Shown here in pieces: positions 1,942 to 55,128 of a stretch of DNA of 64,000 nucleotides. The number at the start of each line of letters is the position of its first letter. Within the stretch, counting starts at the first letter, position 1. This stretch comes from Chlorokybus atmophyticus (lineage: Eukaryota > Plantae > Mesostigma and Chlorokybus algae). The notes under the pieces were generated by a model. The model was not told where the DNA came from. It made no database searches and saw only the letters and a list, made by a program, of their open reading frames with translations. The DNA is taken from contig RHPI01002368.1 in NCBI GenBank assembly GCA_009103225.1, positions 525,397-589,396 of the forward strand, written 5' to 3'. The position numbers were made by a program, and so were the translations under genes.

Positions 1942-2359
1942 GGGAGGCGCCGTGCCGGTGAGGATTTCATCCTCCAGTTGCCGCTGAGTCTGCTCTGGCA
2001 GGGTGTGCTATCCAGGCAGTGGGAAGACGCGATCAAGGGTGTTGCACGATCAGAGGGGACAGATTGTGGATGGGTGTGTTGGCTCCAGCATGTAGGACAT
2101 GAGCAAAATTGCAAACAAGTGCTACTTACTTGTTGGCTGACAACTTTGGATTTTTTATGGGGGCTGTTGTCAACACTTTGCCAACACAAGACCTATACGA
2201 TTTCAAATCAGCTCTTGATATGCATATGGCGCAACAACATGCAACGCCTCAATTGTTAAACTGTTTCCAACAAGCACGAGTTGGTGTATCTCAACATTGC
2301 AATCTATTGTATTGTAGAAACGACTGCTATGTTGGCGTGTGTCACCTATTACGATGTTC

Positions 2360-5300
2360 AAGGCTTCCATAACACATTTGAACACATTTCGTAATACTCT
2401 TCTCGAATGACAAACACGGACTCCTTGATCTTCTTCCATGTGGTTCGTGATGACTCGCTTCGCTCCACTCGTTGTTCACGGCTCTCTCTTTCCATTGGAA
2501 ATCGTGCAACACACCTTAGCAAGTCTACTGATATTCTGGCAGCTTCACACGACCGCGGTGGCAAAAAGTAGAGATATCTTCTGGGACACTCTTGTGCTGT
2601 AACAATTGAGTCATCAACTCTGAAGTAGTAGGCGCCAGTTATATATGTTGTGTCTGCAGGTATGATGATGCCGTAAGCGTCTGGCGCCGATCACCGATCC
2701 CACGTTCCGTGTGACTTGTTTTGTACACCGAAGAACCCAGTATGGCGCAAAGTCTTCATATTCGGCCGAGGTCTTGTCCGCGGCGACAACAAAGGTTTCG
2801 CCAACGCAAATTGACAAAGCCAGCGCATCTTGATTTGATAGGAGAGAAGCTGCACAAGCACGCACTATTAGCCGACGCACCAAAGCTCAAGGTGTACGCT
2901 ATACTTACATCTTGTTCGACGTGTTCAGTGACCCCCTCAAATGCAATCAGCTGTTGCCATCTCCAACTGGGCACATGCAATGGATGAAGGCAGTGCGTGT
3001 AATCTTCATCAGGACAGTTGGAGCAAAAACATGATAACTTTTGAGACGTGATGCGATCGACTTCTCCTGTGCTTTTTACGCATTGAAACTATTGCGTGCC
3101 CGGCACTAAGCGATATGAGCGACCAACTTTACAATGCTCTACCTCTTCAAGCTTCACGAGGTGCACAAAATCCTTTTGAATTTAGCATGCTTTTTCGTAT
3201 GCATCTCGCGAGTAGCATGCTTTTCCATATGCATCTCGCGAAGAGCATGCTAAATTAAAAAGCATGCTCTTCGCGAGATGCATACGAAGACTTGGTACCA
3301 CTATTGTACATTACTCCCGCGAAGTGCCTACTGGTTGTTGCATCAAAGATCTCAACACCTTGTTTGCTGGCTCGATCTAGATGCCGCTTTAGTGTTCCTC
3401 CCTGCCCATCATGTTCACCCTTGCCGTGTTGAGGACATGGGTAATGGCACTCCATCTTGAAGGTGTGCAAATTGTCTTCACCCATGTCGTAAACATGCAC
3501 ACGTGCTGCTGGTGTGCTGTACTGCGCCACTTGAGCAAAGTGAATGGCGCATTTGTACTGCTCAGCACAATTATCGCTCCAACTGACCACCTTCTGCACA
3601 TTGATGTCGCATGGCTTATAATCACTGAGTACTCGCTTCATGCAATGTTGTACAAAGAAGCTATGCTTTTCAAGGTCATCGGAGATAAAAAAGTGCACCT
3701 GCGAGGGATTGAAAGTTAAGGACACGTTAACTAGTTGGCAAAATCTTGACAACAGAGGCGCTAAATTACCTCTTTGATACGTACGGGTTCAACTTCGCTC
3801 GACGTCACTCTGTCAATGTGTTGCTGAGCGTGACGCCAAATCATTTGCACTACGATCACCACCGATCCGCTGACAAAGTGCTGTTGCATCAACTCGTATT
3901 TAGGCTTAAATGCGTAGTTCTATGAAAAATCGCTAATACTAATGACCGTATCTTTTCGGAAATTTCGCAAACACTGCCTCTGCTGCTCTGCTTGCCACTG
4001 CGGCAAGAACGAGTGTAGCTTGAAGTCCTTAAGCTGTCATTGAAGTTTGGTGAATTGGACAAAGGTCATGGTCTGCTTGACAAAGTCCACCCTTGCATAC
4101 TTACGAACTTCGCCGTTCTCTCCCTTGCCTGGTTGCATGCTTTGAACATACAGCCCAGGCAGCATTTGATGTTTGTCTGCAATTTCTTTCGAACAGGTGA
4201 AACATTTGATCCAACCGCAATGAGGACAGTCTACTGTTATGCGAAGATGGTTGTTATACAGACTATCGCTTTATATATACATATATATATATTTGTCGCA
4301 AGATGTGAAATCTAGCAGCCTTGTAATCAAAGTGTCTGATGCAGGTGAGTTCAGTTGCTGACACCTGGTGTACACAGCTTGCATCTACATTTGTGTCAGC
4401 ATGTGCAGTCCTTCTTGATCTAAACAAAGAATAAGATAATACGTTCAATTAATGGACTAGGTCACATGGAGGCTTGCGGCGTACCTAACATACACTGCAT
4501 TTGCATCTGCAGTTGGCGTGCTTCTTGTTTCGACATTGAGACAGCGCCATGACAAGCTCTTTCATCTCTGTATGTTGCGAGCATACGCATACATGCCAAA
4601 CATCTCGTCCAACCACATAATAGGGCTTAATGTTTCAAATATACGCTGATGCACGACTATATCAGGATTCTCTGAGCAAAACTTTAGGTACAAAGCTGTT
4701 TATGTAGTGCCTGCCAAAAAGCGTTGGGTGACAACCTCTCCAGGATGCCGTTGTCCATTTGCGTCGCGGAGCAGTCTTTTGTCACGTTTGCATGCGGACT
4801 CTCTGGTGTTGCAAATCTACAAATCTATATGTTGCCTTATAGCTAGCGTCACGTGTCTCTGCGCGTGTCGCTTTCGGGTACTCCAATCATCTACGTAGGT
4901 AACTAGTTGATAAAACCGCCTATGATGAATGTTGGGTACGGATGCTATATCTGTTACGCGTCTTTTGTCTTTATTAGCTAGCGGCATTCTGGCTGCTTTC
5001 ATTAGAACGTTTCCAGCTGTCTTATGGGCGTTATAGTGAGCATTCTTGACGCTGCTGTAGGCTGACTTGAACATGGCAGCGATGGTCTTGTATGCAGACG
5101 CTTTGCTGACGATCCCCAAATCTTCATCTCGAGTGACTGCAACTGCATTATTGGGATCCTTGATAAATTGTCTCAAGCACATCAGCTTTGTATGTGTCAT
5201 CTTTATGAGAGTGTTTTGGGAGAATTGCCTGAATTGCAGCAACGGTATGCTTGACTCTGTTTCCTTTTGCTCTCTGACGTACGGCTTGAGACTGCGATTC
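2360..5300 (-). pseudogene. Sola2-like DDE transposase pseudogene with spliceosomal introns
   Basis: Ordered minus-strand motifs: KPYYV..CVCSQH (about 4575-4628), HSFLPQWQ..ISDF..NY (about 3925-4010), ISDD..H..FV, WSDNCAEQYK, HGKGEHDGQGGTLKR (ORF 3255-3752), VPGTQ..LSCFCSNC (about 3000-3110). A GT-AG intron at 3699-3769 joins IKE|VHFFISDD in frame. Multiple stops. Confidence 0.75.
3184..3284. repeat. 30-bp tandem duplication plus 24-bp perfect inverted repeat inside the transposase
   Basis: tatgcatctcgcgaagagcatgct (3228-3251), a 9-nt loop, then agcatgctcttcgcgagatgcata (3261-3284). The related unit agcatgc..tatgcatctcgcga also occurs at 3184-3211. Confidence 0.9.
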
Positions 5301-6460
5301 CTTATTCACTGACATGCGCATGGTTGTACGTGTTTATAAACTCTGTGATACATATTGACAAGTACACCACAATCAGAAGTACATCACAATGCCACAGCTA
5401 GACCTCAACCGTTGGCAAAACTTTGACAACACAACCTGAGTGTACAGGCACTATGCCGCAGCTAAACAAGTATAGTCTAGCTGCGGTATAGTGCCTGTAC
5501 ACTTGGGTTGTGTTGTCACACTTGTTGGTAGAATTTTGACAACACAACCCGCTTGTATACACTGCAACTCGTTTGCGTAACAGAATACTACTATTGTTGT
5601 CACATTTACCAACAATTTTTACCCTGCCACACCTCTGTCTGAGGCTATGCGAATGCAAGACACAAGTTTGTGCACACAAGATATCAACTGGAAAGTAAAG
5701 TAAACAAGCAGTCAGCACGCCTGTCACACACAATGTCAACATTGGACACAATGTTTCAAACACGGTGGCCTACACAACATGCTTTTGACTTTGGCTATGC
5801 ACCATGCGAAGCCGCCGTGAGGCGCCCTCTGGATACCACCACGTCGCTTGTCCACAGCTCACACCGGCACTGCTTGAGCAGCTGTATCCAACAAATGAGA
5901 CTGCTGCACGCAATCACATTGAGCCATAGCATGTACAAACGACAACGAGCATGGTTGGTGTGTCATGTGATTGCTGTGCTTCACACCGCAATCGTGCGTG
6001 ACAAGACAGACTAGAATGCCACAATGCTAACCATTGTCACCGCGCGCACCCCCCCCCCCCCCCCACACACACAATCTCAACTACTCTGCGTACACACAGG
6101 CGCGCGCGCGCGCGCGCACGCACATGTGCACGCACGCGGGAAGCATGCACAGCATATTTATGAACAGTCGTGCACACACATGCGTGCACTCGTAAGCTAC
6201 TGGCAGTTGTGACAAGCACAAAGGTGCACAATAATTGCAAGCTTGCACGCGTGCACAAGCACTGCAAGATGCAGAGATTTGCACACACTCAGACCTTGAG
6301 TGCCAGTTGGGTTCATCATGCAAGCTTATCACGGCTGCTTATCAGCTGTGCGCCCGCACCAAGACGACACTGCTGCCTTGCCCCACCACCGAATGCGACG
6401 CCCTCCATCAACTTCGCAGTGCAAGCTAGCATGCAGCCGCAAAGCTGCCTGCTGCAGGCA

Positions 6461-6695
6461 GCTGCGAAGCTAGTTGTGAGAGCGGCGCAGCACCAGCCAT
6501 GGCAGCAGCGCATGCTGACCTGCGCTGCCGCCGCTCCTGACCACGCCGCCCCTTCCACCATCGACCCCGCAATGCAAGCTAGTCGAACAAGTAAAGCTAT
6601 GCTGCCAATTGCGAAGCTAGTTGTGGGAGCGGCGTAGCACCAGCTGAGGCAGCAGCGCATGCTGACCTGCCTCGCCGCCGCTCCTGACCACGCCA
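6461..6695. repeat. About 85-bp GC-rich direct repeat, period 147 bp
   Basis: gcgaagctagttgtg.gagcggcg.agcaccagc...gcagcagcgcatgctgacctgc..gccgccgctcctgaccacgcc occurs at about 6464 and 6611. Confidence 0.8.
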
Positions 6696-9600
6696 ATCTT
6701 GACCACGCCGCTGCCTACGCCGCATGAGCACACCGACCCCGCCACCGTCACCCCTGCTGTGCAAGCAACATGCGAAGCACTGCTGCCTGCCAAGGATTAG
6801 CTTGCAAGCTGCAAAGTGAGTCTTCTACTTTGCAGCTTGCAAGCACTAGCTTGCAGACTTGCAAACTAGTGCCTGCAAGTCTCTTACTTTGCAGCACGCA
6901 AGCAAGCTTCAAAGTAAGTCTCTTACTTTGCATATTGCCGTCTCACTGCTGGTATTACTGAATGGTCTTTATGTTAAAATACAATGATAGTACAGGCTAT
7001 GAACAATCGCGCAAAATAATCATCATTGTTATTTGCATTGTTGCATTGTTGCAATATGTGTCGTGTGCGTATGCGTGATAATGCAAAGTTGTATGATTGC
7101 ATGCGAAGTGACTTGATTATGTAAAGCTTGATGTCATAAAATCAATTGGTCATTTGTGAATTGTTCGCATGCGTAATACAAGAATGACAATTGTGAGTTT
7201 ATACATGATATTGTGTTACGCATATGCAATGTCAATATGTGCGTATTAGTTGTGGTTGCGAGATGTAATGTTGTGACGGTGTGCCATTGTGTATTGGTGT
7301 ACATTGCGTGATCCTGTTGACACGCATGCGCGTGCATATGTAAGCAACACGCATAAGTTGTATTTTGGCACATCATGTAGCCTATGTGCAAGCCTGCTTC
7401 GTGAAGGTCACAAAAAAGTGGGTTAAATTCACGACGTGCGTAAGTTTGACACCTGAATGTGCACACACGAGCAAGCAATCGCGTACACTAGTTATGTAAG
7501 TAATTTAAGTAGGTAAGTAATTACCATTACTAATAATGGTATTGTCAATTGGAGAACCCGTGAGTGTGCCATGGGTCCAGATCCCCATATTAGTATATGG
7601 TATTCATAACAAGTTGTTACGCAAATGCATAAGTATGCGCATGCATACACGTATGCATCTGGATAAGCGTGCACGTAAACGTGCCAACACGTCCATGCGT
7701 AAGCATATGCGCATGCATGGATACACATCCATGCTTAGATACCACATGCACATCTATGCATGCTTGTTACATAATGTGTGAGAAAAACAATGTGAAATTG
7801 GTTTGCATGTCCACATGCATGCGCCAATTAGACAAGCGAATTGGGTTAGCGTTTGACCCGCTGACATCTAAGGCTTGACCCACTGACCAAGTTAGTGGGT
7901 TTGTGTTGGCGACTGCATTGGCAGGCAGAGGGGTATGGTTGGCGGGTAGGAGGGCGTGGGCGTTGGGAGGAGGGGCGGCAGAAGGGGCGTTGAGAGGCAG
8001 AGGGGCGTGGTTGGCAGGCGGCGAGGCTAGGAGGCGGGCACAGGGCAGAGGTAGGGGTGTGTGAGGCGGTTGTAGGCGAGGATTGGGCCGCAAGCGTACT
8101 AAGGACAGCCAAGCGCAGGACAGCTCGCCTCAGGACAGCTAGGCCATCGAGCAGCCCTCTGGAAAAAGGTTTGTGTACTGGTGCTGCCTCCAGCATCAGC
8201 AGCATGTGCAATGGTGCCTTGCTTCTGCTGGCACAGGTCAACAATTAGGTTTCGTGCCACTGCAAATGGTAGATTTGCGTGCAGGCAGCACCAGCACATG
8301 AAACACCTGCAGTTGCTGATGCTGCATGCAGCAGCAAATGCAATCTTGTTTGCTGCGTGCAATTGGCAACAACCGCAATTGGGTTTTCTGTTGCTGCAGC
8401 AGGCATCAAGTGCAATTGCATTTGCTGCTGGTGCTGCTGGTGCTGCATGCTGCTAGCGCAATTGCACTTGCTGCTGGTATTGCTTGCTTGTCACAGCTAT
8501 TGCCATGATATATGCAGAGACATGGTCAACTTATTGTGCGGTCTATCATTGTGCAAGAACAACAGGTCAAGCCAAGAGAACAAGCGCAAATGCAAAGTTG
8601 CTAGCGGCAACACCAAGGACATACAGAAGAAGAGAAATTTCGGTGCGTAGTTGCATTGCCAACTGGCTGCTTGTATGCTATGCTGCTAGTCTACCCTAGT
8701 TAATTTCCTTTACCTGCTGGTACAGTGTTGCTAACCAATTGTTGCACTTGTGCTTTGTGCAAGTTTATGTTGGCAGAATCTACCAACACACCCTCGCACA
8801 AGTGCTTGTCAAACACCAACTTGCTAGGTGCGCGCCTGTCTGTTGGTGATGTTTGCCAACAGGTTGAAGCTCTGCTGTTCATCTTCTCAGTGTTGACTGC
8901 TTGTGTTGGCAAGCTTTTGCCAACAGCTTGCAATGTATGACTTGTCTCACAGCAGTACTTGCAGGTATGTAGCTCGTACACTTCAACCAGATTCAATCCC
9001 GGAAGACAATGAACATGAACAGGCAAGCAGCAGATGCTTTTGAGGCACATCAAGAGACGGATGAGTCTGACAATGACCACAATGAAGACGATGATGACCA
9101 TAACCCACATATTGACAACCAAGGCGAGAACAAGTCTGGCGCAGAAAACCACGACTGTAAGCTTTCTCTGCTTGCTATTGTCATGCTTGCTCCACTCAAC
9201 TACATAAGCTTACAGCTGTGCTTGTTCCAGGGTTGACCATTGAAATAAAAATAGGGAAGGGATGGAAGAAAGCTGCTGGATGTGAAGATTTGCGCAACCT
9301 CTTAAAAGACTTTGTTGTAAAACCACAGCATGTAGCAAAATGGGAAGTCAAGATATCCAAGAAAGACAAAGATGACCTTCTGCGCTATATGCTGACAACT
9401 ACACAAGACAGTGCCAAACAAGCAAGTCAGATGGAGGTGGCTGCAACAGCAGTGCCACCTGAGTGGTTTATTTGTCTAGAAGTGAACGTGGTAATGCTCA
9501 ATAAGCAGTATTATGATGTAACAGCACTAACACTGCCTGTGTCGTAAGAAGACGTCAAGTATGACCATACCATTTGATTTATACTTGGGCCTTATCAAAG

Positions 9601-10138
9601 ACCTTAGAGTTTTAGTCATTCCTACAAGTAGCGTGGGCCCTGCCGACTAGCATCTACTCACCAAAAATGCATACCTGTTTGATCTGCCTGTTAACAGAGC
9701 GCATTGGACGCTTGCTTGAAGTAAAAGGCAGCAAATGGTCTGCTTGGACAAACCAGATGACCTTGTTGACATGCTGGTCAAAGATATCAGGAAGCCAAGC
9801 TATCCAGCAGCGCTTGTCAACTTTTACTATTTTTTGTAAGGTATGACTGTTACAGCATGTCCTTCTGTATGCATGCAAAATGCTAAACATATGTTTGTAT
9901 CAGCTCTTGGCGCCAAATGCGTTGGGAGCTATGCTGCCGCAGTATCTCCCAAAAAGTGAAGCAAGCAAGCCACAACAGCTTTGTCCATTCCAGCAAACAC
10001 AGCTGGCACCGCAGGTAAACATGCATGGTTACAGCCAATGGCAATTGCTCGACACAACACTGTTGGTAAAATCCTACTAACATTACGGGCGATGTGCTTC
10101 CACCACTCAGCCTTCCACCCGTTTTCAAGAAGGCCGAC

Positions 10139-10747
10139 ATGAAAACCTACAAGGTTTATCTGCACATGATGCGGCCTGCTTAGGGTTCACGACAAGCACG
10201 AAGAATCGGAAAGTCTAGACTAAAAGAGCTTGAGAAGTCAATGAGAGAGCACCATGGCGACCTCCAAGCGCACAAGCCTTGGCTCGTGCTTATTTGTAGA
10301 AAAGTCGATTGAAAAGAGGTGTCTGTATCACAAGAGTATTTCAATCAATGGCACATTGCTCGTGCGGACAAGATTATTCATGAGGTGCTTGGCGTAAACC
10401 ATTCGCTGTTGGCTAAGACCAAGTTAGCCAAAGAGGATTCCACTAATGAAGATTTGCAGAATGAATGGGTCGAGATGAGCGACCCAAGAGCAAGTACACA
10501 CCTGCTGTGTAATTATGCGCATCAGCAAGTGTGTTGACAAGTTTGTCAACATGAAATACGGGTGGTGTTAGGCATTTCCAATGAGCAAGCACTGCTGTGG
10601 GCCAAGCAACATAACCATCAAGACAACGAGACAAGACCATCAACCCTGTTGACGCTTCTTGCCACCTTCCGCGACAAGTACCTTCTGCGCGGCGAGCCCA
10701 AGATGCCTACGCAGGGAAAGAAGTCGAACAAGTATTTGGAGGGCTGA
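10139..10747 (+). pseudogene. ParB/Sulfiredoxin-like N-terminal domain (part of the fusion gene)
   Basis: A single frame with internal stops reads RQARRIGKSRLKELEKSMREHHG..PWLVL ... HEVLGVNHSLLA ... IRVVLGISNEQALLWAKQHNHQDNE. This aligns by eye with ParB QPR..FDEE.LEELA.SIKEHG..PIVV / IIAGERR / DLSDEEAL..A..EN. Confidence 0.7.
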
Positions 10748-11758
10748 AAAGCCTGCTTGGTTGATCTTGCCTTGCTTAAAACTACAAAGCGGCAATGTGA
10801 CAAAAAAGCTGTCCGGAAATAGCTAGAGAGTATTGCATTCACATCGGGTAAGGTTGTTTCCGTCTTAATACATTTCACATCGGGTAAGGTTGTTTCCGTC
10901 TTGACACATTTCATTTCGATCGACATATCTTATTGCTGTATCCTGCAGGCTTGCCACTAAGCTGAAGCTCAACAACAAGCAATATCAAGAGTTCTTCAAT
11001 GTGCTAAGCGAGCATGATGACATCATCGATGCTTGACCGTGCCACACGCTGGAACTGTTTCACTCCTTGTCCACAGAGCAGTTCATGTCTGTGCTCAAAG
11101 AAACTAAGAGCAACAAAGCCAATGTCAAGGTCAACCGCGCATTAAAGGATTATGTGCAAAAAGTTCAGCGCATAGGTCGCTTTGTGTCATTCTTAGCATG
11201 CAAGGCAATTGATGGCGCAGTCTTTGGCGATCCAAGGTGAGCACAGGCTTGTTACAATGCAGCTTGTCATAGTGTGCGTATGCACACAACATGTGTGCGT
11301 TTATACGTGCAATGCTTCAGGTTGGACAAACGACTGCGCATGAAGGTACCTGATCTCTACAATGCCAAAGACAAGCTGTTAAAAGCTGCTCCACGGAAAT
11401 CATGAAGATTGGTGGAAAAGGTTAGAGAATGTGATGAAAAGCCTTGAGTCTAACTTCCCTGTTAAATATCTATAGATCTCTTATGTCATTAAACGCGAGG
11501 TTCATGAACTTTGCAATATCCCTTTCCCAGAAGCGCGCAAGGCTGGCAAGCTGCCAGGCTCCATCACTATGCCCATATAAGCGCCGCTATGTTGTCACAA
11601 TTTTGCCACCACTGCATTGCTGTTAGGGTGTTAGCAGAATTTAGCCAACAGCATGTAAGCCGCATTTACTTTGTAGCAATGCATGCCGTGTTAACTAGCC
11701 GTGCGGTTGTCATAGAGTTGAACTTGCATATCCGTGCAAGAGATTTCCAACCGATGCT

Positions 11759-12779
11759 TTGAGCACACGCAAGCTGGAGTTCCACAACGTCAAGCAACGT
11801 CTGATGCCGCACTTTCAGCCTGTGCATCTGTTCATTGACAACCTGCCCGCATCTAAAGCATACCCCTCTTTTCCGCTTGTTTACTTTTACATGCCCTTTA
11901 ATGAGCCAGACAGCGAGCACCCTTTCACTATGGCACACTTCAAGGAATGGGTGGAGGTGCTGGCCCGCCACAACAGTGGCTTGAACTACTGAACGCTTTT
12001 AGCTTTTGTGAGAAAAAAAAAGCATTGCTGTATGCAAGACAGTATTGGAAAGCAACGCCTTTGTCGTGAAGTTCACCACGTATGTGCACGCCGCAACAAG
12101 TAAGTCAAAGTAAATGCAACAGATATGTACACTTTCGGTCAGTACACATAAAGCACTGTGTGTGCAGAGTTGATGACGTTCCCGGATCATCTTAATGGCC
12201 AAAGCAGAACCGAGCCTCTGCTTATAGCCCTGTACAAAAACGTGGATGACTCAATGAAAAAAGCCAACCTACATACCTGGTTTGAGTTGCGCTGTGAAGA
12301 TCTGATAGTGTGGCACGATTCCTCCCGCGGCACAAATTTTATCAGTTAGGGCCTTATGAAGAAGTCTCGCCGTCTCTTAAGACGTCCTTGACGCCGCAAA
12401 TGATATTGAAGACTCAGCTGGTGTAGATGTAGAACACAATCAGCTTGCTTACAATCAAGGTCAAGGCAGATGTGAAGCAGTACGCAAATGGCGGGCAACC
12501 AAATATCTGAGCAATGAGAGCAAGCAGCTAGTCTGCTGGCAGCAAAAGCTTTGCAGCAGTCTTGCACAAGACTTCTTGCCCATGCGAGCTTCCAACGAGA
12601 AAATCTGGATCCTCGACCTTGGCGCTGGTGCTGGAGGTCTGACTGAAGGAGCTCTCAAATCTGGCTACAACATCTTTGCTGTAGACGACAATGTTACGTA
12701 CATGACGAGGCTTGAAGACCATTATTACGCCTTCCGCAAGGAGCTCAAGGAAGCGGTAATGTACTATAGCAAAATTTGA
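11759..12779 (+). pseudogene. Beta-class amino-DNA methyltransferase domain, N6_N4_Mtase-like (part of the fusion gene)
   Basis: FPLVYFYMPFN (motif IV position, 11888-11899), RTEPLLIALYK (motif VIII-like), then an open stretch 12393-12779: ESKQLVCWQQKL..LAQDFLP..KIWILDLGAGAGGLTEGALKSGYNIFAVDDN (motifs X, I, II). Motif IV before motif I is the beta order. Confidence 0.75.
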
Positions 12780-13506
12780 ACATCATGAAAGTCTTTATCA
12801 ACTACTTAAGGCACCTTTCGTTTGTAAGCTTAATAATTGCAAGCTCATGTTTCGTGTTCGATGCTGCAGGAACGCCACACTATTCTGCATTCAGCAGCAC
12901 AAAAAGACACATCTATGTCTTTACCCAAAATCAAAACCAAGCAGCAGCTGGTGGAGGAGCGATTGCTCTTCTTGTTTCCCAAGCCGAGTTTCGGAGACAC
13001 TCTGCACATGGTCTTTCTTTTGCGCTGGGTTAATCTTCCAGGTTCACAGGCCATTTTATAGGAGCCCGAAATGTACAAGGACATATGAGACTACCTCATC
13101 AGTCGACACAATGCCATTTAAAATAGTAAGTTTGAGTTGCGCGATTGCAAGCTTCTCCAAGATTAAGCATAGCATAGCATAACCCACCTTGTGTTTAATA
13201 GTGGATGACCACGGTGAAGTTAGAGCTAGCTTGGCTAGCGAGTACGTCATATTGGAGCATCATCTGCAATGTCCCTCAGATTCAGCAGAGGGTCAGCTCA
13301 CCCAGGTTACAGCGCTCACACATGGACCATCAGCATCGCAAACAGCGTCGCATTCAATAGTAGAGAACCAGCCAGGAGGGGAGGCAGATAGCCAACAGCA
13401 CAAGCTAGAACTTAACAGAGAGCTGGTGAAAGACCCGTTCGAAAGCCAGCCAGACAGCTAGCTAGCCAGTCAGCTAGCAGAGCAGGGAAAACTCATCACA
13501 CGTACC

Positions 13507-13800
13507 CACTGCTGTGTTCCCCTCTGCAACATGCTCTTAAACCTGGAAAAGGAAAAGCCCACAGTGTGCGATGAAGAAGAGTGTTGCCGCCGTAATTACC
13601 ATCTGTGCTACACGCGATACTCAGGTGTTGAAGAGGCCATAGGAGCTCTCGGCCCAGACCACCTTGACAAGGCACACAAGGGAGGCTTGCAATCTCGGGT
13701 TCAATCCGTGCAGAAGGCAGGGAAAACGGTGGGATTGTTGAATGTTTTGGGCTACAACATGTGCAAGACTGCCAACAGTTGCTCAGAATGCGCGGGTCTA
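13507..13800 (+). pseudogene. Degenerate PHD-like zinc finger (part of the fusion gene)
   Basis: CVPLC-x14-CDEEEC-CRRNYHLC-...-CSEC in ORF 13531-13854 and its upstream in-frame extension. This is a C4-H-C3 ligand order with H-x-C shortened by one residue. Confidence 0.55.
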
Positions 13801-14299
13801 CTGAAGCCTTGGGCAGATCAGTCTCCTCTCAGGAATATGTTGCTTAGTCAGTGAAGCAAAGCTGCATACAAAACAGAACATGTATGCTAAGGTAGCTTCT
13901 TTGCAGCCTTGTACATAGCTACATTCTATGTGTGGATGCGCTGTCAACATGCATCATACATGCGATAGACCGTAGCTTTTGTGACCTTGTTGTACAGCAT
14001 GTTGCCACTGCCTTTCTCTCTGTGTTGTCTGAGCTCAACTAATACTCAACACATGATTTAATGATGCAAGAACAACATACAAAGATTGTTGTTCTTATAT
14101 TGATCTTTCGCAAGCATGATGCAAACTACAGTTGCATCTTCTATTGGCAAATTTCTGACGACTGATCAATGATAAATTTGACAAATGGATGGCCACAGTC
14201 ACATCTTATGTGAATGTAAACCCTTGCCCTGAATATGCTCAATTACTGCATGAGCGGTGTATATGTAAGTATTGTGCTTTGCGAGACACAGCAGGTCTC

Positions 14300-17200
14300 C
14301 TCTGTCTTGTTTGTGACATGACTATATACATGCATAATTCGAGCAATTCTGTCCACTATTTGTCCCCCTTGAGCGTGCGACAACCCATCACTGCGCTCAA
14401 CGCGCGTGGTGCGCTCTCCTCCTCGCCCAAAAGCAATGGTAGTGGGATCTGCTCCACGCATGATGGTCTCCCCTGTGCGCTCAGCTTGCTGACCTCGCGG
14501 GATAGCCTGAGTGACGTCAAGGACGCGCAACGTAGCTGCTGTGGCAGCGGACTCAACGATGGCACTGGCAGTAGTTGCAATAGTGCTGGTCAGTGGCGCG
14601 AAAGTGGTCTCAACGCTCGCTGACACAGGTGGTCCTGCAGCTGGAGCGGGACCGGTGCAATCTACTGCTGCAGAGTTGGTGATAGCAGTGGCTGTCGCCA
14701 TCGTGCTCACCTGTGTTGGCGTCACGGTGCCCACTGATGTACAACCTCCTGGTGCAACTGGAGTAGTTGCTGCTGACGTTGACGGAGTCAACGTCAGCGG
14801 AAACTACTCGTCGTAGCCGGTGTGGCTGTTGCTGCTGATGCAGCACCACTGATGGCTTCAAAGGAGGTAGCTACTAACGATGTTGCAGCTTCCCCTCGTG
14901 CTCGTTGGGATGTTTGAACGCGTGAGTGCTCGTGTCCCTCGTGCGCTTCGGAGCCATCAGTGCCCATTGGGCAGAGTAGCAGGCGCGGTAGTCCTGCTCC
15001 TTGTCTTCCTCCAAGCGTGCCATACGCGCCACGAGGGCAGCAATATGCTCATCAGCTGGCGGGTTGACTGAAGCCTTGGCGGCAACAGCAGCAGCGCGCG
15101 GACGTCCTTCCAATCCCTTGCGCTGAGGAGGACAATTCTTCCCCCTGTAGCCTTGCTCTTCCTTGCGAGTTGGCGTAGTTGTTGTTGTTGTTATAGTGTC
15201 CGGTGTGGTTGCTATTGTAGCCACCAGCGTTGTTGCCATTGTGGCCTCCAGTGTTATTGCTGTTGTAGCCACTAGGCTTGTTGCCGTTGTGGCCTATAAT
15301 GTTGCTGCTGTTGTAGCCACCCGAGTAGTTGTTGCTATAATTGTTGACAGGTTCCAACTCAGGGAACTTGAGCCAGCAGATTGACTCCAAGTGGCCCGTC
15401 TTGTGACATGGTCGCAGACAAGGACTGAGTATTCTTTGGTGCACTCCTTTTGGTAGTGACCATGCCGTCCACAGCGATGACACAGCACAGGGGCAGGCAA
15501 GTAAGCATGGGCTGACCGTTTCCCTTTATCGCGTGCTAGTGAAGCGTCATGGCCACGCTCGCGGCAAGGAGGCTCAGTAGTTGTGCCGGCTACAGGTCGA
15601 GAGAGTATGAGGCACTGCGATTGGTGTCCAGCACTGCCTTTTCATACACCAAGCGCTTGTGGATGGCTTGTGCGGTCTCGAAAGCTTCCTTGAGCTTGTA
15701 GCCAAGGGGCCTGCTGTAGTGCCAGGTTAGGCGTGTCGACTCGCTCAGAGTGGCATCCAACTAATTGACATGGACCACTGCAGCAGCCTCATCACTGACA
15801 ATCTTATAGTCAGTGTCCTTCAACAGCCCTTTTAGTCTGGAGTACAGGCGTAGAGGGTCCTCGTTGGGCTGCGTCGAAACCGTCTCAGCTCCTCCACTTT
15901 GCTGGTGGTCTGAAGTGGGAAGGTGCGACGAAGTGCAACATATAGGTCCTTGAGTGGATAGTCAAAGATGGCAGCACTTACGGTGATGGCTGGTGCGCGC
16001 AGTGCAAGTGACCGGAGGGTGAAAGCACTGCCTCCCGCACGAGAGCCAGGTGTTGCCAGAGGTAGAGGTGTGCCCACCTCAACGGCCCTCTTGGTCTCAA
16101 TCCCTACAGGGGTCAGGTTGACGATTACCAACTCAAGCTCCTCCACCTCTGCCCTGTTGATGGCTGCAGCGATGGACAAGCGTAACTGCAGCGGGAGTGG
16201 GGGCCAGGTGGAAAAATGGCTGCTGGACTGTGCAATGACGCAGATGCTATGGTGCTGGCGAGCTCATCGTAGCCATCAACTCGATGCAATTCAGCAACAG
16301 ACTTCCAAACATCGTGTGCTTCATGGTCAAGATACCGAGCAGTCATTCGAAAGAAATCCCATCTGACCAATCGTTGTTCTTCGGAGCTTGCTGTCGCATC
16401 TTGGATTAGAACTTGGTGATGAATTTGTTTAGCGAGGTAGTACCAGCACATCCGGAGAAGAGCAAGGATGTGGTTGAGCTTGAAGACTCCATCTCATAGT
16501 CGTCATTGTCGGGCGATAGTGGGGAGGCTAGATGGCTAGGTGTAGACTGGAACGGAGTGAAGCCGGAGACAGAACGCGAGCCTCTGCTGCTGCGATTGTT
16601 GCTCCCGCCGCTGGTCCGCTTGTAGGTGAGATTGAAGGTTGGGCTCTGTCACGCCCACAGGGCAGGCAAAAGTCATTCTCTGTCCCTTACTTATGTGGTA
16701 AGTAAGATGAGACCAAGTGGGGACCTACACTACGCAAGCGTGTGTAGTGCTTGTGGGTGTGCTCTCATGTAGGTCTGCTCTAGAGCCTGTGCGGCCTTGA
16801 GCATGATGAACTACACAAGGCATGATGGCAAGCACAGGGCTGATCATAGCCGATGAGACATCATGTAATGTACAGAGACATATGTGTGCATATGTCCGCA
16901 TGTGTATGCATGTGTTTGCATATGTGTGCACATGTACGCATATGAGTGCATATGCGTGTATGAGAGGTATGTACTAGATGTATGCATGTATGTGCATGCA
17001 TGCGCATATGTGTGCATATGTGCGCATATGTATGCATATGTATGCATGAGTATGATGTCCTAGGCTGATGTGACCAGCCAAGGACGTTCACAACGTCCAA
17101 GGATGATGTGTGTGATGTCCTAGGCTGATGTGACCAGCCTAGGGACGTTTACAATGTCCAAGGCTGATGTGTGATCAGTCTTGGGCGTTGAAAGAGGTCC

Positions 17201-18499: not shown

Positions 18500-21400
18500 G
18501 CTTGGGGCTGAATGTAGGCATGCTTAAGGAGGACTGGCATGCGAGGGTAGTTGGCATGACAGTAGCAACTTGCGTACCCCACTTGTTTAAAATCGAGTGT
18601 TTTTACTCGATCACTTGGTCCCCAGCTTGGAGATCATTATCAAGTCGATATTGCCAGTCGGCATACGTTTTTCCTGTCTTGTGCTGCTCTTTGGCAGTCT
18701 TTTGCACTTGCCAATGTGGCATGCATGTTCTCTGTAAACTCTGTAGCCGTCGGCACTTTGCTGAACGACTTTACTTGTAAAAACATAGGTGTCAACACAT
18801 GACGGCCGTAGTTCAAGTACAACGGAGTGCTACGTAGCGACTCATGCCAAAATTGTTCATTGAAACACAGCCAGCGGCAAGTACACATCCTAGTCATCCA
18901 ACCTGGGTGACGTGTAGTGGCGCAGCACATCTTCTGGTACTTGATTGGCGCGCTCAATTCGGCCATCACTCTGCTGGTGCGGTTGGCACGATCGACTTGC
19001 CCTCACGATACCATAACCCTTTCTGACAAGTGATCTTTTTAGAAAGGGTTATATGCCTGCTTGAGCATCCCAACAAACCATGTGTCAAGTGCATAAGCAT
19101 TAGGCAAACGCCCGGCAATATCTTTCACATCAGTTGCCATAGGGTCCTCCCCACTTGGCGTGTAACTTGCCACTGGTGCTCCACTAGCATGCTTATAAGC
19201 GTTTTTGGCAAACCGCTGATCTCAGGCTCACGGTTTGCCATAAGTGTCTCATTGACAGCGCTTTCAAGCTCAGTTGGCAACTCGCAAGTACTGGCACTAG
19301 GCTCACTTGACTGTGCCCACCCTTGGCTTCGTGCACGTGTTGTCATTGCCAACAGCAATGGTGAACGGCTCAAAGAGTCTGCACGGCCACTCGCCCTGGT
19401 CTGTAGACCCAGGTATTGTTGAATCGCGACAAGTACTCAGCCCACCTCGCTTGTCTTCTCGACAAGGTTGGTTGGGTCTAAAAGAAGGCAAGGGGGTTGT
19501 AGTCGGCGATCACACTGAACCCGCTTTCCACCCCCTCTAAATAGCAATGCCACACTTGTAGCGCGTGAACCACCCCCATACAACAACTCTTGCTCAGTTG
19601 TTGTATGGTTTCTCTCAGCTGTAGAAAACTTCTTGCTGACATAAGCAAGGGGGTGCCCACTCTGGAGCAACACAGCACCAGTGCCTTTAATATGTCATCG
19701 CAAATTACCTCAAATGGCTTGGTAAAATCCGGCAACTGCCATACCCTATTTGCTTGCAATATGGCCTAGGCACTCAAGTTTCATCTTGCCAAATTCGCAC
19801 TTGAGCATGTAAGCATGTAAATAATGCGAACGCAACGTTTCCAACACCTCGCGCACATGCGCGCAGTGCATGTTAATGTCCTTGCTGAACACGAGTATAT
19901 CATCAAAATATACAAGCATTGCCTTGCCAACCAGCTTGTGAAAGACACAGTTCATTATAGCTTGAAAGGTGGCTGGCGCATTTGTCTGCCCCAAAGGCAG
20001 CACTTTGGACTGAATGTGGCCAAGCGGCGTACGAAACAATGTCTTTGGCACATCTTCTGAGGTGATACGTATCTGATGGTACCCACTGAGCAGGTCCAAA
20101 GAGCTGAACACCGAGGCTTCGCTCAATTGTTCAAGCAAATTATCTATCCTTAGCAGCGGATACCTATTCTTAATGGTCGTCTTATCTGAGGCCTAGTAGT
20201 CTACGCGCATGCGTAGCCGGCCATCCTTACTTTGGCACTCAAAGGATGGGTGCCCAAAAGGGAGAGCTACTTGGCTCAATCGATCTCTTTGCAAGCAAGG
20301 TCTTCATCTGCCCACCCATGTCCGCATACTTAGCTGGACTCAATCTATACACATGTATGAACGGAGGTTGCGCATCCGATTCAAGAGGGATTGTATGCCA
20401 TGTGTCCCTCTTCAATGGTAATTTAGGCAATTCAGCTTGAAACACATCAGCATACGCCGAGAGCAGACCTTATAAAGCTACGTCTTGCGGTTTGCCATGG
20501 GTGTCATCAGTTGCAGTGGTAGGGATGTCTGTGGCAAATGGCCGGACTAGCACCAGAAGGGGTTTTGCTCCATGGCGAACTGCCCTCTTCACCTGTAAAG
20601 CACTCAACAAACAATTTGAGACATCCGTTTCATATTTGTCATCACCTGCAGTGGGTACACCTTCGTGCCCATCTGCGCGCAAGGTCACACGACCTCGCCC
20701 TTTTCGTACACAGCAAAGTTTGGTGTCTGCGTCCGTGCGCAAGCCATATGCTTGCTTCAGATGGTTGCCAACACTAACATCCACGCCTGGCACCTCAACT
20801 AGGATGACCAGAACCTTGAGCTAAGCATAGTAACTCTGCACATGCACGGACAAGCGCACGACTCCTTGCACGGGGATTTCAAGCTTGTTCAAGGCGACAA
20901 CCGTGTTATCGCACTTGGTGACACAAATGTCTAAGCGCCGCACAAGAGACTCACTCATAAAGTTCTCTGGCGTGCCCGTGTCTATCATCAAGACGCACAG
21001 TACATGTGCTACTCATGCCTTGAACAGCCATGTCAAGTCCAAAGATCTTACTTAATGGATGGCAGGAGGGTTATAAATCACACGAGCAACCACCTTACCG
21101 CTTGACTTCACCAAAGAGCTGCATGCCCTTAACGATGCGAGTTCATAACCCGCTGCTGATGCTTAGGTACTATGATGCATGCACTCGTTTTGTGCTTGCT
21201 CTTGCTCTTGCAATCAACATAGTGCTTGAGCATGTTGAGCATCTCGCCAACAGGTGCCTCGATTGCATATAGCAAAACACATTTGCCCACACAATCGTGC
21301 TGCAAGATTTGAATGTCCACATGTATACCCAACACATTCTCCATCATAGAAACATTGCATGATTGGGGAAGGCGTGACAACAAGTCACTATAAGCACCCT

Positions 21401-22929: not shown

Positions 22930-24300
22930 GTGTCTTCTCCATGTTCAGCTATGAGTCTGAGGCTTTGCAGAATGTGGTGGTGGATTCTTGAAGATCAGCA
23001 TAGGAGGGGGCGGTCAGACCAATATATGCCTCAGCATCATCAACATAACCGTATAGCGAAGCTCTTGATTCTGCTCCGGGCCACCTGGAGGGTTTGGGAG
23101 ACGCAGGCCGCAAATAGAAGGAGAAGAACGACTGATTGCACCTAAACATTCCATATTGAGGGTGAAGAGTGACAGTGCCTAGCGGATACCCTTGGTTGAC
23201 GCGTTGAAGGGCAAAAGATCTTGACAAGAAGCTGTTGATGCTGACTCTGCTCCTGCCTCCTCCAAGGTATGAATCCACGAACATAGACGAGCCGAAAACC
23301 TTAACCGAAGCAGCACTTTTTGCAAGAATCCCCAATGCAACCTATTGAAAGCTTTTACAACATCCAGGACAAGGAAAGCTGCTTGCTGTTCTGAGGTAGT
23401 GGCGTAGGTCATAGTGTCCATAGCAATGCGAAAATAATCCAGGATGTACCTGTGCGGTACAAAGCCAACCTGTGCCGGGTGGACACATTAACGGAGAAGA
23501 GGGCTATGCGGCTGGCGATGGCTTTGGCAAGAATTTTGCAGGAGCGGGAATAGGGTAATTAGCCTCCAATTCTTAAGAAAGCCCCTGTCACTCTTCTTGT
23601 AGAACAGGACAATCACACCTTCTTCCTGAGACATCCCCAATTTTTCAGAGTTCAAGACGTGCTCAGTAAGTGAGATAGGAGTCCGCGAGCATGGCCCAAA
23701 AGTGAAGCCAAAAGAGGAATGTGAGACCGTCTTTATCATCAGGAGCCTTGTCCGGGGACATAGCAGCAAGTGCCTCCTGCAGCTTTTTGCTGAAGAGGAA
23801 GTTTCAAGTCGGCTGCTTGCTGTGAACTGACGCGAGGGGAGAGTGCAGCTAGGCATCTAGCTGTTTCTGCCACCTTGTCTGCAGAGGATTTGAGTGTGGA
23901 TGTTTAAAGATGGTTGTAGTCAGCCTCAAACATGCTCTTGGGGTCCGTGATGGGGGTCGCAAACTTGAAGTGGTGGATTCATTCCAAGATCACGTGCATA
24001 TGATTTGAATAGCGTAGCAGACGTCCCCGTAAAAATACGTAAGTTGTCATGTGTTCCCCTTCAAGCCTCCATTTGCTAGCCATGCGAATGGATGCTTGCT
24101 CCATGGTGTGACAATGTACCTCCTTGACAGACACAAGGTGTTGGTGAGATGGTGGGTCGAGTTTAAAGGTGATGAGGCTAAGGCAAGCTCTGTGTGTGCA
24201 AGGTCTGCTTGAAGCTGTTGAAGCTTTGTAGTCCGCTGGCTGCTACATCTGTGGGTGTGTTGTCTGAAGATAGTTGCTGCCCTCTCCAGGAATTCCTTAG
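22930..24300 (-). mobile_element. L1/Tx1-like LINE ORF2 reverse transcriptase remnant
   Basis: KWRLEGEHMTTY, EGVIVLFYKKSDRGFLKNWRLITL, QVGFVP, LVLDVVKAFNRLHWGFL and YGYVDD motifs in order on the minus strand; frameshifted. Confidence 0.88.
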
Positions 24301-52319: not shown

Positions 52320-55128
52320 ACCTGGTATGCTGCTCAGGCTCTGGGCCCTTCCCATGCATGCGGCCATGCAATGCTTGTACACTAACGGGAATAACGATGG
52401 GCATTACCGCTAGATGTACATGCAAAAGAATGAAGTCACATCATTGGCACCCGAATCTATGAAAGCAACAGGCGTAATTAGGGTTTGCCACGTGCATGCG
52501 GCAGCGTGCATGTGGTGCAGGGTTGTCGCCGTGCCGGAGGGGGAGGGGCTGCAAGAGCATGGGGACGAGGAAGGAGGTAGAAGAGACGTAGAGCAAGGAG
52601 AGAGCAGGAACGCTGGAAGCGAGCAGGCCCCACTCATTATTGCCATGATGGCCACGGTATGTTTGATTGCTTTTTGCCTTGGCCGATGTTATAGTCTGGT
52701 GCAACGAGCATGATTGACATCAGGAGTATGCTACACAGTGCATTGACAGATCTGATTAAAGCGTAGTACCAGAATGACACATGCGCATCATGCGCTTGCA
52801 TAAACGCAGTCAGCAGCCGCCAAGAACGGCGATGTGCACTGCGATGCTCGTTGTGCCGGAGCCCACCTCTTGGCCTGAATCACTGCCATGCACGTAATGC
52901 AAGTCATGCATGGCATGCGGTGGTAGTCACTAGCAGCGTTTCGTCCACACTTGTGCAACATACCTGTGTCCCATGTACACAGTATGCATACTAGTATGGT
53001 TTTCAATCGCCGCACACAATGCGTTCACGTGGACAATCACACCGTGTGATGGGCCACAGCTACAGACGCACACATCAGGATCCGTGCGTGCTCATACCAC
53101 GCATGCGCCATGCAACTGTCATTGCACCCGAGCACGCATGTGCATGCCCGCGCGCGCACAAGCCCACACACATGCGTGCACACAAGCGCACCCACATATA
53201 GGTGCTGATGAACAGTTTCTGCTATTTCGGGAGCAGTCTCAGCAACTGTAGAAATGGTAGAGCACGTGGTGATTGTTATCCGTGAGGTCGCGTAATGTGT
53301 GTGTGTGTGTGTGTGAAGAAAGGGAGAAGCAAACATTTGCGGGATTGAAGGACTCCTTCAATGGCGGCCATCAGCGTGCAACAACAATAAAGACAGTTCT
53401 ATCAGCAGGGGCGTTGGCAGGTTTGTGTCTTGTGTTGGTTTGTGTGTGTGCGCGCGTGCGGGTGCGCGCGTGGGTGAGAGATAGTTAACACAGACGGGCA
53501 GCCTTTGTCAACAGCAGCTTCATTCAATACTGCGCACATTGGAGGCTCACCAGCCGCAGCAGTTGAAGGTGAGCCTGCAATGGCGGAACCGGCATCAGCG
53601 TACTGCCAGCAGTGTGCTCGCAATGCTGGTCGTCAGTTTGTGGTCGGCTGCTATCAACACTACTTGCATTGCCCCTGCTGCTCCCGCCAGGCTGGGATGG
53701 CTGCAGAAGGGCGTCAAACTGTCGNNNNNNNNNNACCTGGTATGCTGCTCAGGCTCTGGGCCCTTCCCATGCATGCGGCCATGCAATGCTTGTACACTAA
53801 CGGGAATAACGATGGGCATTACCGCTAGATGTACATGCAAAAGAATGAAGTCACATCATTGGCACCCGAATCTATGAAAGCAACAGGCGTAATTAGGGTT
53901 TGCCACGTGCATGCGGCAGCGTGCATGTGGTGCAGGGTTGTCGCCGTGCCGGAGGGGGAGGGGCTGCAAGAGCATGGGGACGAGGAAGGAGGTAGAAGAG
54001 ACGTAGAGCAGGAACGCTGGAAGCGAGCAGGCCCCACTCATTATTGCCATGATGGCCACGGTATGTTTGATTGCTTTTTGCCTTGGCCGATGTTATAGTC
54101 TGGTGCAACGAGCATGATTGACATCAGGAGTATGCTACACAGTGCATTGACAGATCTGATTAAAGCGTAGTACCAGAATGACACATGCGCATCATGCGCT
54201 TGCATAAACGCAGTCAGCAGCCGCCAAGAACGGCGATGTGCACTGCGATGCTCGTTGTGCCGGAGCCCACCTCTTGGCCTGAATCACTGCCATGCACGTA
54301 ATGCAAGTCATGCATGGCATGCGGTGGTAGTCACTAGCAGCGTTTCGTCCACACTTGTGCAACATACCTGTGTCCCATGTACACAGTATGCATACTAGTA
54401 TGGTTTTCAATCGCCGCACACAATGCGTTCACGTGGACAATCACACCGTGTGATGGGCCACAGCTACAGACGCACACATCAGGATCCGTGCGTGCTCATA
54501 CCACGCATGCGCCATGCAACTGTCATTGCACCCGAGCACGCATGTGCATGCCCGCGCGCGCACAAGCCCACACACATGCGTGCACACAAGCGCACCCACA
54601 TATAGGTGCTGATGAACAGTTTCTGCTATTTCGGGAGCAGTCTCAGCAACTGTAGAAATGGTAGAGCACGTGGTGATTGTTATCCGTGAGGTCGCGTAAT
54701 GTGTGTGTGTGTGTGTGTGAAGAAAGGGAGAAGCAAACATTTGCGGGATTGAAGGACTCCTTCAATGGCGGCCATCAGCGTGCAACAACAATAAAGACAG
54801 TTCTATCAGCAGGGGCGTTGGCAGGTTTGTGTCTTGTGTTGGTTTGTGTGTGTGCGCGCGTGCGGGTGCGCGCGTGGGTGAGAGATAGTTAACACAGACG
54901 GGCAGCCTTTGTCAACAGCAGCTTCATTCAATACTGCGCACATTGGAGGCTCACCAGCCGCAGCAGTTGAAGGTGAGCCTGCAATGGCGGAACCGGCATC
55001 AGCGTACTGCCAGCAGTGTGCTCGCAATGCTGGTCGTCAGTTTGTGGTCGGCTGCTATCAACACTACTTGCATTGCCCCTGCTGCTCCCGCCAGGCTGGG
55101 ATGGCTGCAGAAGGGCGTCAAACTGTCG
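52320..55128. repeat. About 1.4-kb near-identical tandem duplication joined by a 10-N gap
   Basis: 52320-53724 matches 53735-55128. The only difference I noticed is an 11-bp indel (gtagagcaaggagagagcagg vs gtagagcagg). Confidence 0.92.

Follow-up and report, generated by a model that had tools for sequence, protein, structure and literature searches.

Do two decayed genes that point away from each other in the genome of the alga Chlorokybus atmophyticus belong to one transposon, and if so, what did the gene beside the transposase encode? The locus lies in a stretch of 64,000 nt (assembly GCA_009103225.1, contig RHPI01002368.1, positions 525,397-589,396 of the forward strand), which we call the window and in which all positions below are counted from the first nucleotide. 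The original prediction, made from the nucleotide sequence, had proposed a Sola-like, cargo-carrying transposon of about 12 kb in which a transposase gene on the minus strand is paired with a divergent gene for a ParB-methyltransferase-PHD fusion protein, and it had reported no terminal inverted repeats (TIRs). The data presented here show that a single cut-and-paste DNA transposon of 12,351 bp, decayed and carrying a transposase gene and a divergent cargo gene, very probably spans positions 2036-14386. What the cargo gene encodes is a separate question, and the answer is given in weaker terms.

Ends of the element

When the two end regions, 1 kb each, were aligned in inverted orientation, the best local alignment joined 2036-2070 to 14386-14352 without a gap, with 27 of 35 positions matching, and the element terminates in AGGGTGTTGCACG at one end and in CGTGCGACAACCC at the other. 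These TIRs overturn the statement that none could be found, and the limits that had been set at 2100-14200 are replaced by 2036-14386. When a degenerate pattern built from both TIR arms was run over the 64 kb it matched twice, exactly at the two arms, where 0 matches were expected and shuffled sequences gave none. Immediately outside the TIR register there is a perfect 4-bp target-site duplication (TSD), ATCA, at 2032-2035 and 14387-14390; at a fixed register such a match is a 1-in-256 coincidence. Base composition changes at the same places. The G+C content (GC) within 2037-14386 was 0.468 compared to 0.568 in the left flank and 0.545 in the right flank, and within 100-200 bp of both ends it dropped from about 0.58 to about 0.40, coinciding with the TIRs.

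Several observations weaken the case for these boundaries. An inverted match with the score of the TIRs was found by chance in 7 of 978 random pairs of 300-bp windows and in 28 of 372 random pairs of 1-kb windows, and the two arms differ at their first base, which is A in one and G in the other. The TIR match by itself is only moderately convincing evidence. A second copy of the element was not found in the window and the ends are known from a single copy, and continuity of the flanks, judged by open reading frames across the excised site, was not demonstrated.

A palindrome shared by the ends and both genes

A 20-bp palindrome, GTTGNCAA-N4-TTGNCAAC, occurs in four perfect copies, at 2166, 3734, 5411, and 8905, all of which are inside the element, and copies with 2 mismatches lie inside it at 5524 and 11591. 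The other 52 kb of the window contain a single match, with 2 mismatches. The expectation from shuffled sequence for matches with up to 2 mismatches was 0.49 for the whole window, of which the element makes up 19%. Weaker copies with 3 mismatches are present at 2252, 11630, 14143, and 14177. The distribution of the sites follows the architecture of the element: two sites lie 130-250 bp inward of each terminus, and further sites lie upstream of both genes and within both genes. In the cluster upstream of the transposase gene the palindrome units alternate in orientation and include a hairpin with 49-nt arms (5419-5467 and 5475-5523).

By analogy with known elements, the palindrome is most likely a candidate binding site of a protein encoded by the element, either the transposase or the cargo protein through its DNA-binding part. 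The subterminal pairs suggest transposase binding, for which they are candidate sites, while the cluster upstream of the cargo gene agrees with the arrangement described at red-algal cargo genes of the ParB type. Because the TIRs, the TSD, the shared palindrome, and the composition step agree, we assign the transposase gene and the cargo gene to one element with good confidence, and this part of the original prediction stands.

The cargo gene: structure and enzymatic signature

A plus-strand gene in many pieces had been placed at 9.0-13.85 kb, and such a gene was indeed found there, beginning with an ATG at 9009 and ending with a stop after 13851. Its open blocks change frame and a GTAATG donor directly follows the block with motif I (see below); both features are consistent with introns. 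The region 10184-10831 is in one frame and is interrupted by TGA at 10310, 10535, and 10745 and by TAG at 10820, which puts the number of in-frame stops in the cargo gene at four or more. Inside this gene, at 10838-10913, a 36-bp unit is repeated in tandem (2.1 copies, 95% identical), probably within an intron. The last block, 13462-13851, forms a Cys/His-rich tail.

Class I methyltransferases have in common a motif I that binds S-adenosylmethionine (SAM) and this motif is not specific for any one of them. Such a motif, with an acidic residue after it where strand 2 ends, is the only solid feature of the cargo gene and is found in the block 12381-12776, where motif I and the following strand read ILDLGAGAGGLTEGALKSGYNIFAVDD (ILDLGAGAGG...FAVDD). 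All searches were run block by block. The open blocks of the two genes were all scanned with Pfam, with E limits of 1-10, and only generic methyltransferase matches resulted: the motif I block matched Methyltransf_25/11 (E about 0.05-0.1), DREV, and FtsJ, with overall E values of 0.05-0.14. Among the six blocks used in PDB sequence searches there was one generic class I match, that of the motif I block to the class I enzyme 3ccf (E 0.0017); the same block matched TFB2M with an E of about 0.5. Wider searches were equally negative. With the motif I block, exhaustive HMMER against 1.84 billion representatives returned 0 matches and tblastn against phages gave nothing meaningful, and no relatives came from two scans of metagenomes and one of viral contigs. 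Exact look-ups of two open reading frames of the window gave no record. A plasmid search for ParB-fused PF01555 enzymes found only short YubD-like methylases. The AlphaFold2 single-sequence model of the motif I block had a predicted local distance difference test score (pLDDT) of 35 and was too poor for a fold search.

The question then is whether the intact cargo protein was a self-targeting DNA methylase, that is, an N6-adenine or N4-cytosine methylase with a ParB-like part that sits on the palindromes and marks the transposon's own DNA, either against silencing or to regulate transposition. We consider this possible but doubtful, and its plausibility comes only from analogy with published elements. 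In pairwise BLASTP the motif I block aligned best, though weakly, with residues 209-249 of E. coli YhdJ, a PF01555 enzyme, over 41 residues around motif I (E 0.029), whereas against E. coli Dam there was no motif I alignment and against the generic PrmA only 11 residues aligned (E 0.35). We also built a PF01555 profile from 14 sequences, which are YhdJ and 13 phage enzymes, six of them confirmed PF01555 members. When the window's 1,721 open frames were scored with this profile with filters off, the motif I block came first and aligned with the profile over its motif X-I region. The nearest named clusters of this block in the ESM Atlas were PF01555 and Dam-type methylases, with scores of 0.82-0.85 (0.85 for PF01555) and few shared features, which can be taken as a lead only. 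In addition, palindromes are arrayed directly in front of the cargo gene, and the same hypothesis has been published for Sola1-1_Ec32 of Ectocarpus (PMC12477816) and for red-algal Plavaka elements (bioRxiv 10.1101/2025.02.11.637652).

Against a self-targeting methylase is the fact that these scores are below significance: the first place in the profile search was reached with 3.4 bits and an E of 3.5, and the Atlas scores are below 0.9 with a low count of shared features. Pfam favours the generic Methyltransf_25/11 and found no PF01555 match in the cargo blocks, the best PDB match is also a generic class I enzyme, and the upstream cargo blocks, which by eye have the look of an N-terminal half, gave no score with our PF01555 profile. 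The catalytic motif IV, (D/N/S)PP(Y/F/W), and its one-substitution variants are absent from the three plus-strand frames of 8900-14400. ParBc was absent from the Pfam results of every open block at E up to 10, although these blocks are short and broken by stops and a remote domain could escape such a scan; PDB searches with 10313-10534 and 10538-10744 returned no matches at all, and a DGxHR-type motif was not found. For the PHD finger, a loose, zinc-finger-like C4HC3 pattern occurs in the last block, but it is non-canonical, with an H-x1-C spacing and a 48-residue loop, and neither PHD (PF00628) nor any other finger family was matched in Pfam and no finger family in PDB. Finally, stops break the cargo gene here. 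The labels ParB, PHD, and catalytic methylase find no support in this decayed sequence, and what is left of the amino-methylase label is the SAM motif I with a weak likeness to N6/N4-methylases. Judged by its sequence, the cargo gene looks methyltransferase-like and is possibly derived from a DNA amino-methylase, and this is the reading that we prefer.

A more specific proposal is that in intact members the palindrome would be parS-like: a ParB-like module that has diverged strongly would bring the cargo protein to it, and the protein would place N6-methyladenine (6mA), N4-methylcytosine (4mC), or another methyl mark along the transposon. This is improbable. If it were true, a Sola-type transposon would carry a self-addressed epigenetic tag in an alga of the streptophytes, near the base of the land plants.

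The transposase gene and its superfamily

The minus-strand transposase gene that had been placed at 2.4-5.3 kb was confirmed as a stop-broken DDE gene in several pieces that runs from 5305 to 2361. Its block 4270-3770 contains a Cys-rich stretch followed by DTVISISDFS*NYAF (the asterisk is a stop), the block 3788-3258 with its 177 codons bears WSDNCAEQYK and HGKGEHDGQGG, and Cys/His-rich and C-terminal blocks extend to 2361. DFS*NY, WSDNCAEQYK, and HGKGEHDG are motifs of the DDE type. The catalytic part has two in-frame stops, TGA at 4037-4039 and TAG at 3920-3922, the latter inside DFS*NY. Because in-frame stops interrupt both genes, both are dead in this copy, which is unable to transpose by itself or to produce the cargo protein. 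TGA accounts for four of the six in-frame stops of the two genes (10310, 10535, 10745, and 4037), which would fit decay of CGA to TGA at methylated CpG. A 30-bp repeat located 3' of the catalytic block is probably intronic.

The transposase is probably of the Sola superfamily because a 4-bp TSD and short TIRs fit Sola, and to this extent the Sola-like label of the original prediction is retained. This class was assigned from TSD and TIR traits. Pfam and PDB searches of the transposase blocks gave no match, scans of metagenomes and viral contigs were blank, a homologue search with the catalytic block found none, a blank that is weakened by a length filter, and the AlphaFold2 single-sequence model of this block had a pLDDT of 38, too poor for a fold search. 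The sole family-level signal came from ESM Atlas features, by which the block 3258-3788 is nearest to eukaryotic DUF7869 clusters with a score of 0.96 and 213 of 256 features shared. This is language-model likeness without a known tie to Sola, and it could mean that the transposase is of another superfamily, for example Zisupton/KDZ-like or of an unclassified DDE group of the DUF7869 type. It counts against the Sola assignment, as does the fact that Pfam DUF7869 itself did not match the transposase blocks. In favour of Sola, an 8-bp duplication was not found at the termini, where the 4-bp TSD and short TIRs fit Sola. We regard a superfamily other than Sola as unlikely.

Layout and proposed history

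As had been noted before, the two genes are head to head with a repeat-rich spacer between them; the distance is about 3.6 kb. The spacer is partly low-complexity and includes duplicates (6402-6547 and 6555-6694) that are 80% identical. It is very unlikely that a short, transposase-only transposon merely lies beside an unrelated decayed host gene or another element, as the single copy in the window, the failure to find external relatives, and the heterogeneous, GC-richer spacer might suggest, because the TIRs and the TSD enclose both genes, the degenerate TIR pattern found no TIR-like sequence between them, and the palindrome is found at each end and within or close to each gene, with hardly a copy elsewhere.

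A probable history of the single transposon is as follows. Intact relatives would be autonomous cut-and-paste transposons with two divergent, intron-containing genes within 35-nt inverted ends, one for the transposase and the other for a SAM-methyltransferase-like cargo protein with a Cys/His-rich tail. The transposase would bind the ends, cut at the TIRs, and leave 4-bp duplications, and this copy would have inserted into GC-rich repeat DNA and duplicated ATCA. What we infer in this scheme is membership in Sola, binding of a protein to the palindrome, and modification of DNA of any kind. The positions of the features are given in Table 1.

Table 1. Features of the transposon and its target site in the window
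Feature	Positions	Strand	Basis and details
Left TSD copy, ATCA	2032-2035	none	Direct reading; identical to 14387-14390
Left TIR, 35 nt	2036-2070	+	Inverted alignment, degenerate pattern
Left subterminal palindrome sites	2166-2271		2166-2185 perfect; 2252-2271 with 3 mismatches
DDE transposase gene	2361-5305	-	Blocks 4820-5305, 3770-4270, 3258-3788, 2759-3088, 2617-2886, 2361-2690; translations
30-bp tandem and inverted repeat (GCATGC..TCGCGA), 3' of catalytic block	3183-3288		Probably intronic
Palindrome-unit cluster, alternating orientation, upstream of transposase gene	5411-5565		Sites 5411, 5524
Intergenic spacer	5566-8760		GC 0.50-0.56, low-complexity and short duplicated stretches
Palindrome array 80-240 bp upstream of cargo ATG	8768-8927		Perfect 8905-8924; degenerate near 8768, 8843
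Cargo gene	9009-13854	+	ATG 9009, stop after 13851; many open blocks; translations
Cargo open blocks, among them	9009-9233, 9161-9544, 10184-10831, 11699-11989, 12152-12346, 12381-12757 (motif I block), 12837-13058, 13183-13458, 13462-13851	+	
Palindrome-like sites inside cargo gene	11591-11649		11591 with 2 mismatches, 11630 with 3
Loose C4HC3 zinc-finger-like pattern, last cargo block	13510-13791	+	Regular expression only
Right subterminal palindrome-like sites	14143-14196		14143, 14177, 3 mismatches each
Right TIR, 35 nt	14352-14386	-	Inverted alignment, degenerate pattern
Right TSD copy, ATCA	14387-14390	none	Direct reading

Flanking DNA

The retroelement debris that had been noted to the right of the element was found again: at 19481-20192 (19.5-20.2 kb) the minus strand has open frames with Ty3/gypsy reverse transcriptase and RNase H motifs (YPLLRIDNLL...SGYHQIRI; LPDFTKPFEVICDD). 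In the left flank, 1-2036, the longest open frame is on the minus strand. The transposon may have landed inside one long retroelement. Farther to the right, at 23182-23487, a minus-strand open frame has the look of a non-LTR-type reverse transcriptase (LTR, long terminal repeat; FVPHRYILD...LVLDVVKAFNRL), and identical 20-mers at 52432/53847 and 53493/54897, with offsets of 1,415 and 1,404 bp, suggest a repeat or an LTR pair of about 1.4 kb. Close to the element, about 0.5-0.9 kb to its right, the stretch 14877-15321 consists of GC-rich 24/48-bp tandem repeats with Thr/Ala-rich low-complexity frames.

Significance and comparison with known systems

In eukaryotes it is rare for a transposon to bring along both an enzyme that modifies DNA or chromatin and the binding sites that go with it, and such elements bear on how host silencing is evaded or exploited. 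The value of this locus in that respect is limited by the fact that the copy is dead, the enzyme assignment is weak, and the concept has been published. What it adds is a fully delimited example from the green lineage, in which the TIRs and the TSD are defined and the palindrome GTTGNCAA-N4-TTGNCAAC is a candidate binding site.

The Sola2-Fanzor elements of dictyostelids have 4-bp TSDs, imperfect TIRs of 12-21 bp, and a captured second gene (Bao and Jurka 2013, PMC3627910). The Chlorokybus element is like them in its 4-bp TSD, its short imperfect TIRs, and its second gene, and it differs in that their cargo is Fanzor (TnpB-like) and their TSD is AT-only (AWWT), whereas here the cargo is methyltransferase-like and the TSD is ATCA.

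A second comparison concerns the methylases known as "chlorophyte-type Dam", which are fused to a helix-turn-helix of the ParB type and whose sister family has fusions to PWWP and ZfCW/PHD-X (Iyer et al., BioEssays 2016, PMC4738411). ParB-type binding, an adenine methylase, and PHD-like fingers are combined in the green lineage, and they make up the architecture that the original prediction had proposed for the cargo protein. Those enzymes, however, are Dam/DpnM-like, whereas the motif I block of this element had no motif I alignment with Dam and a slightly better one with YhdJ.

In the Plavaka (EnSpm/CACTA) elements of the red alga Bostrychia, PAG2 combines a PF01555 methylase with SET, and PAG3 combines a ParB-like part with a 2-oxoglutarate (2OG) oxygenase; inverted-repeat arrays adjoin the ParB-type gene and the authors propose that its protein binds and modifies its own transposon (bioRxiv 10.1101/2025.02.11.637652, Curr Biol 2025). 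Like the Chlorokybus element these are giant DNA transposons with inverted repeats by the cargo gene, and their cargo is of a DNA- or chromatin-modifying type, as it may be here. Their transposase, however, is of another superfamily and SET and 2OG are encoded in separate cargo genes, whereas here there is one cargo gene with no SET or 2OG signal. Their inverted repeats form long tandem arrays, while the palindromes of this element are dispersed singly or in small clusters.

A closely similar system is Sola1-1_Ec32 of the brown alga Ectocarpus, which is 21.5 kb long and in which a protein of 1,104 aa with a ParB-like part and an N4C/N6A DNA methylase is encoded on the strand opposite to the transposase (PMC12477816, Genome Biol 2025). 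Both are giant transposons, of the Sola superfamily in Ectocarpus and probably so here, with an accessory gene on the strand opposite to the transposase gene; in the Chlorokybus element the cargo gene (9009-13851, plus) and the transposase gene (5305-2361, minus) lie between the same TIRs. Compared by description, they differ in that Sola1-1_Ec32 has ParB and a methylase whereas this copy has no detectable ParB or catalytic motif and has a Cys/His-rich tail. They also differ in size and host: Sola1-1_Ec32 is a Sola-1 element of 21.5 kb from a stramenopile, and the element described here is 12.35 kb long and resides in Chlorokybus atmophyticus. The literature already has this kind of system for brown, red, and green algae, and this locus is a further example of it.

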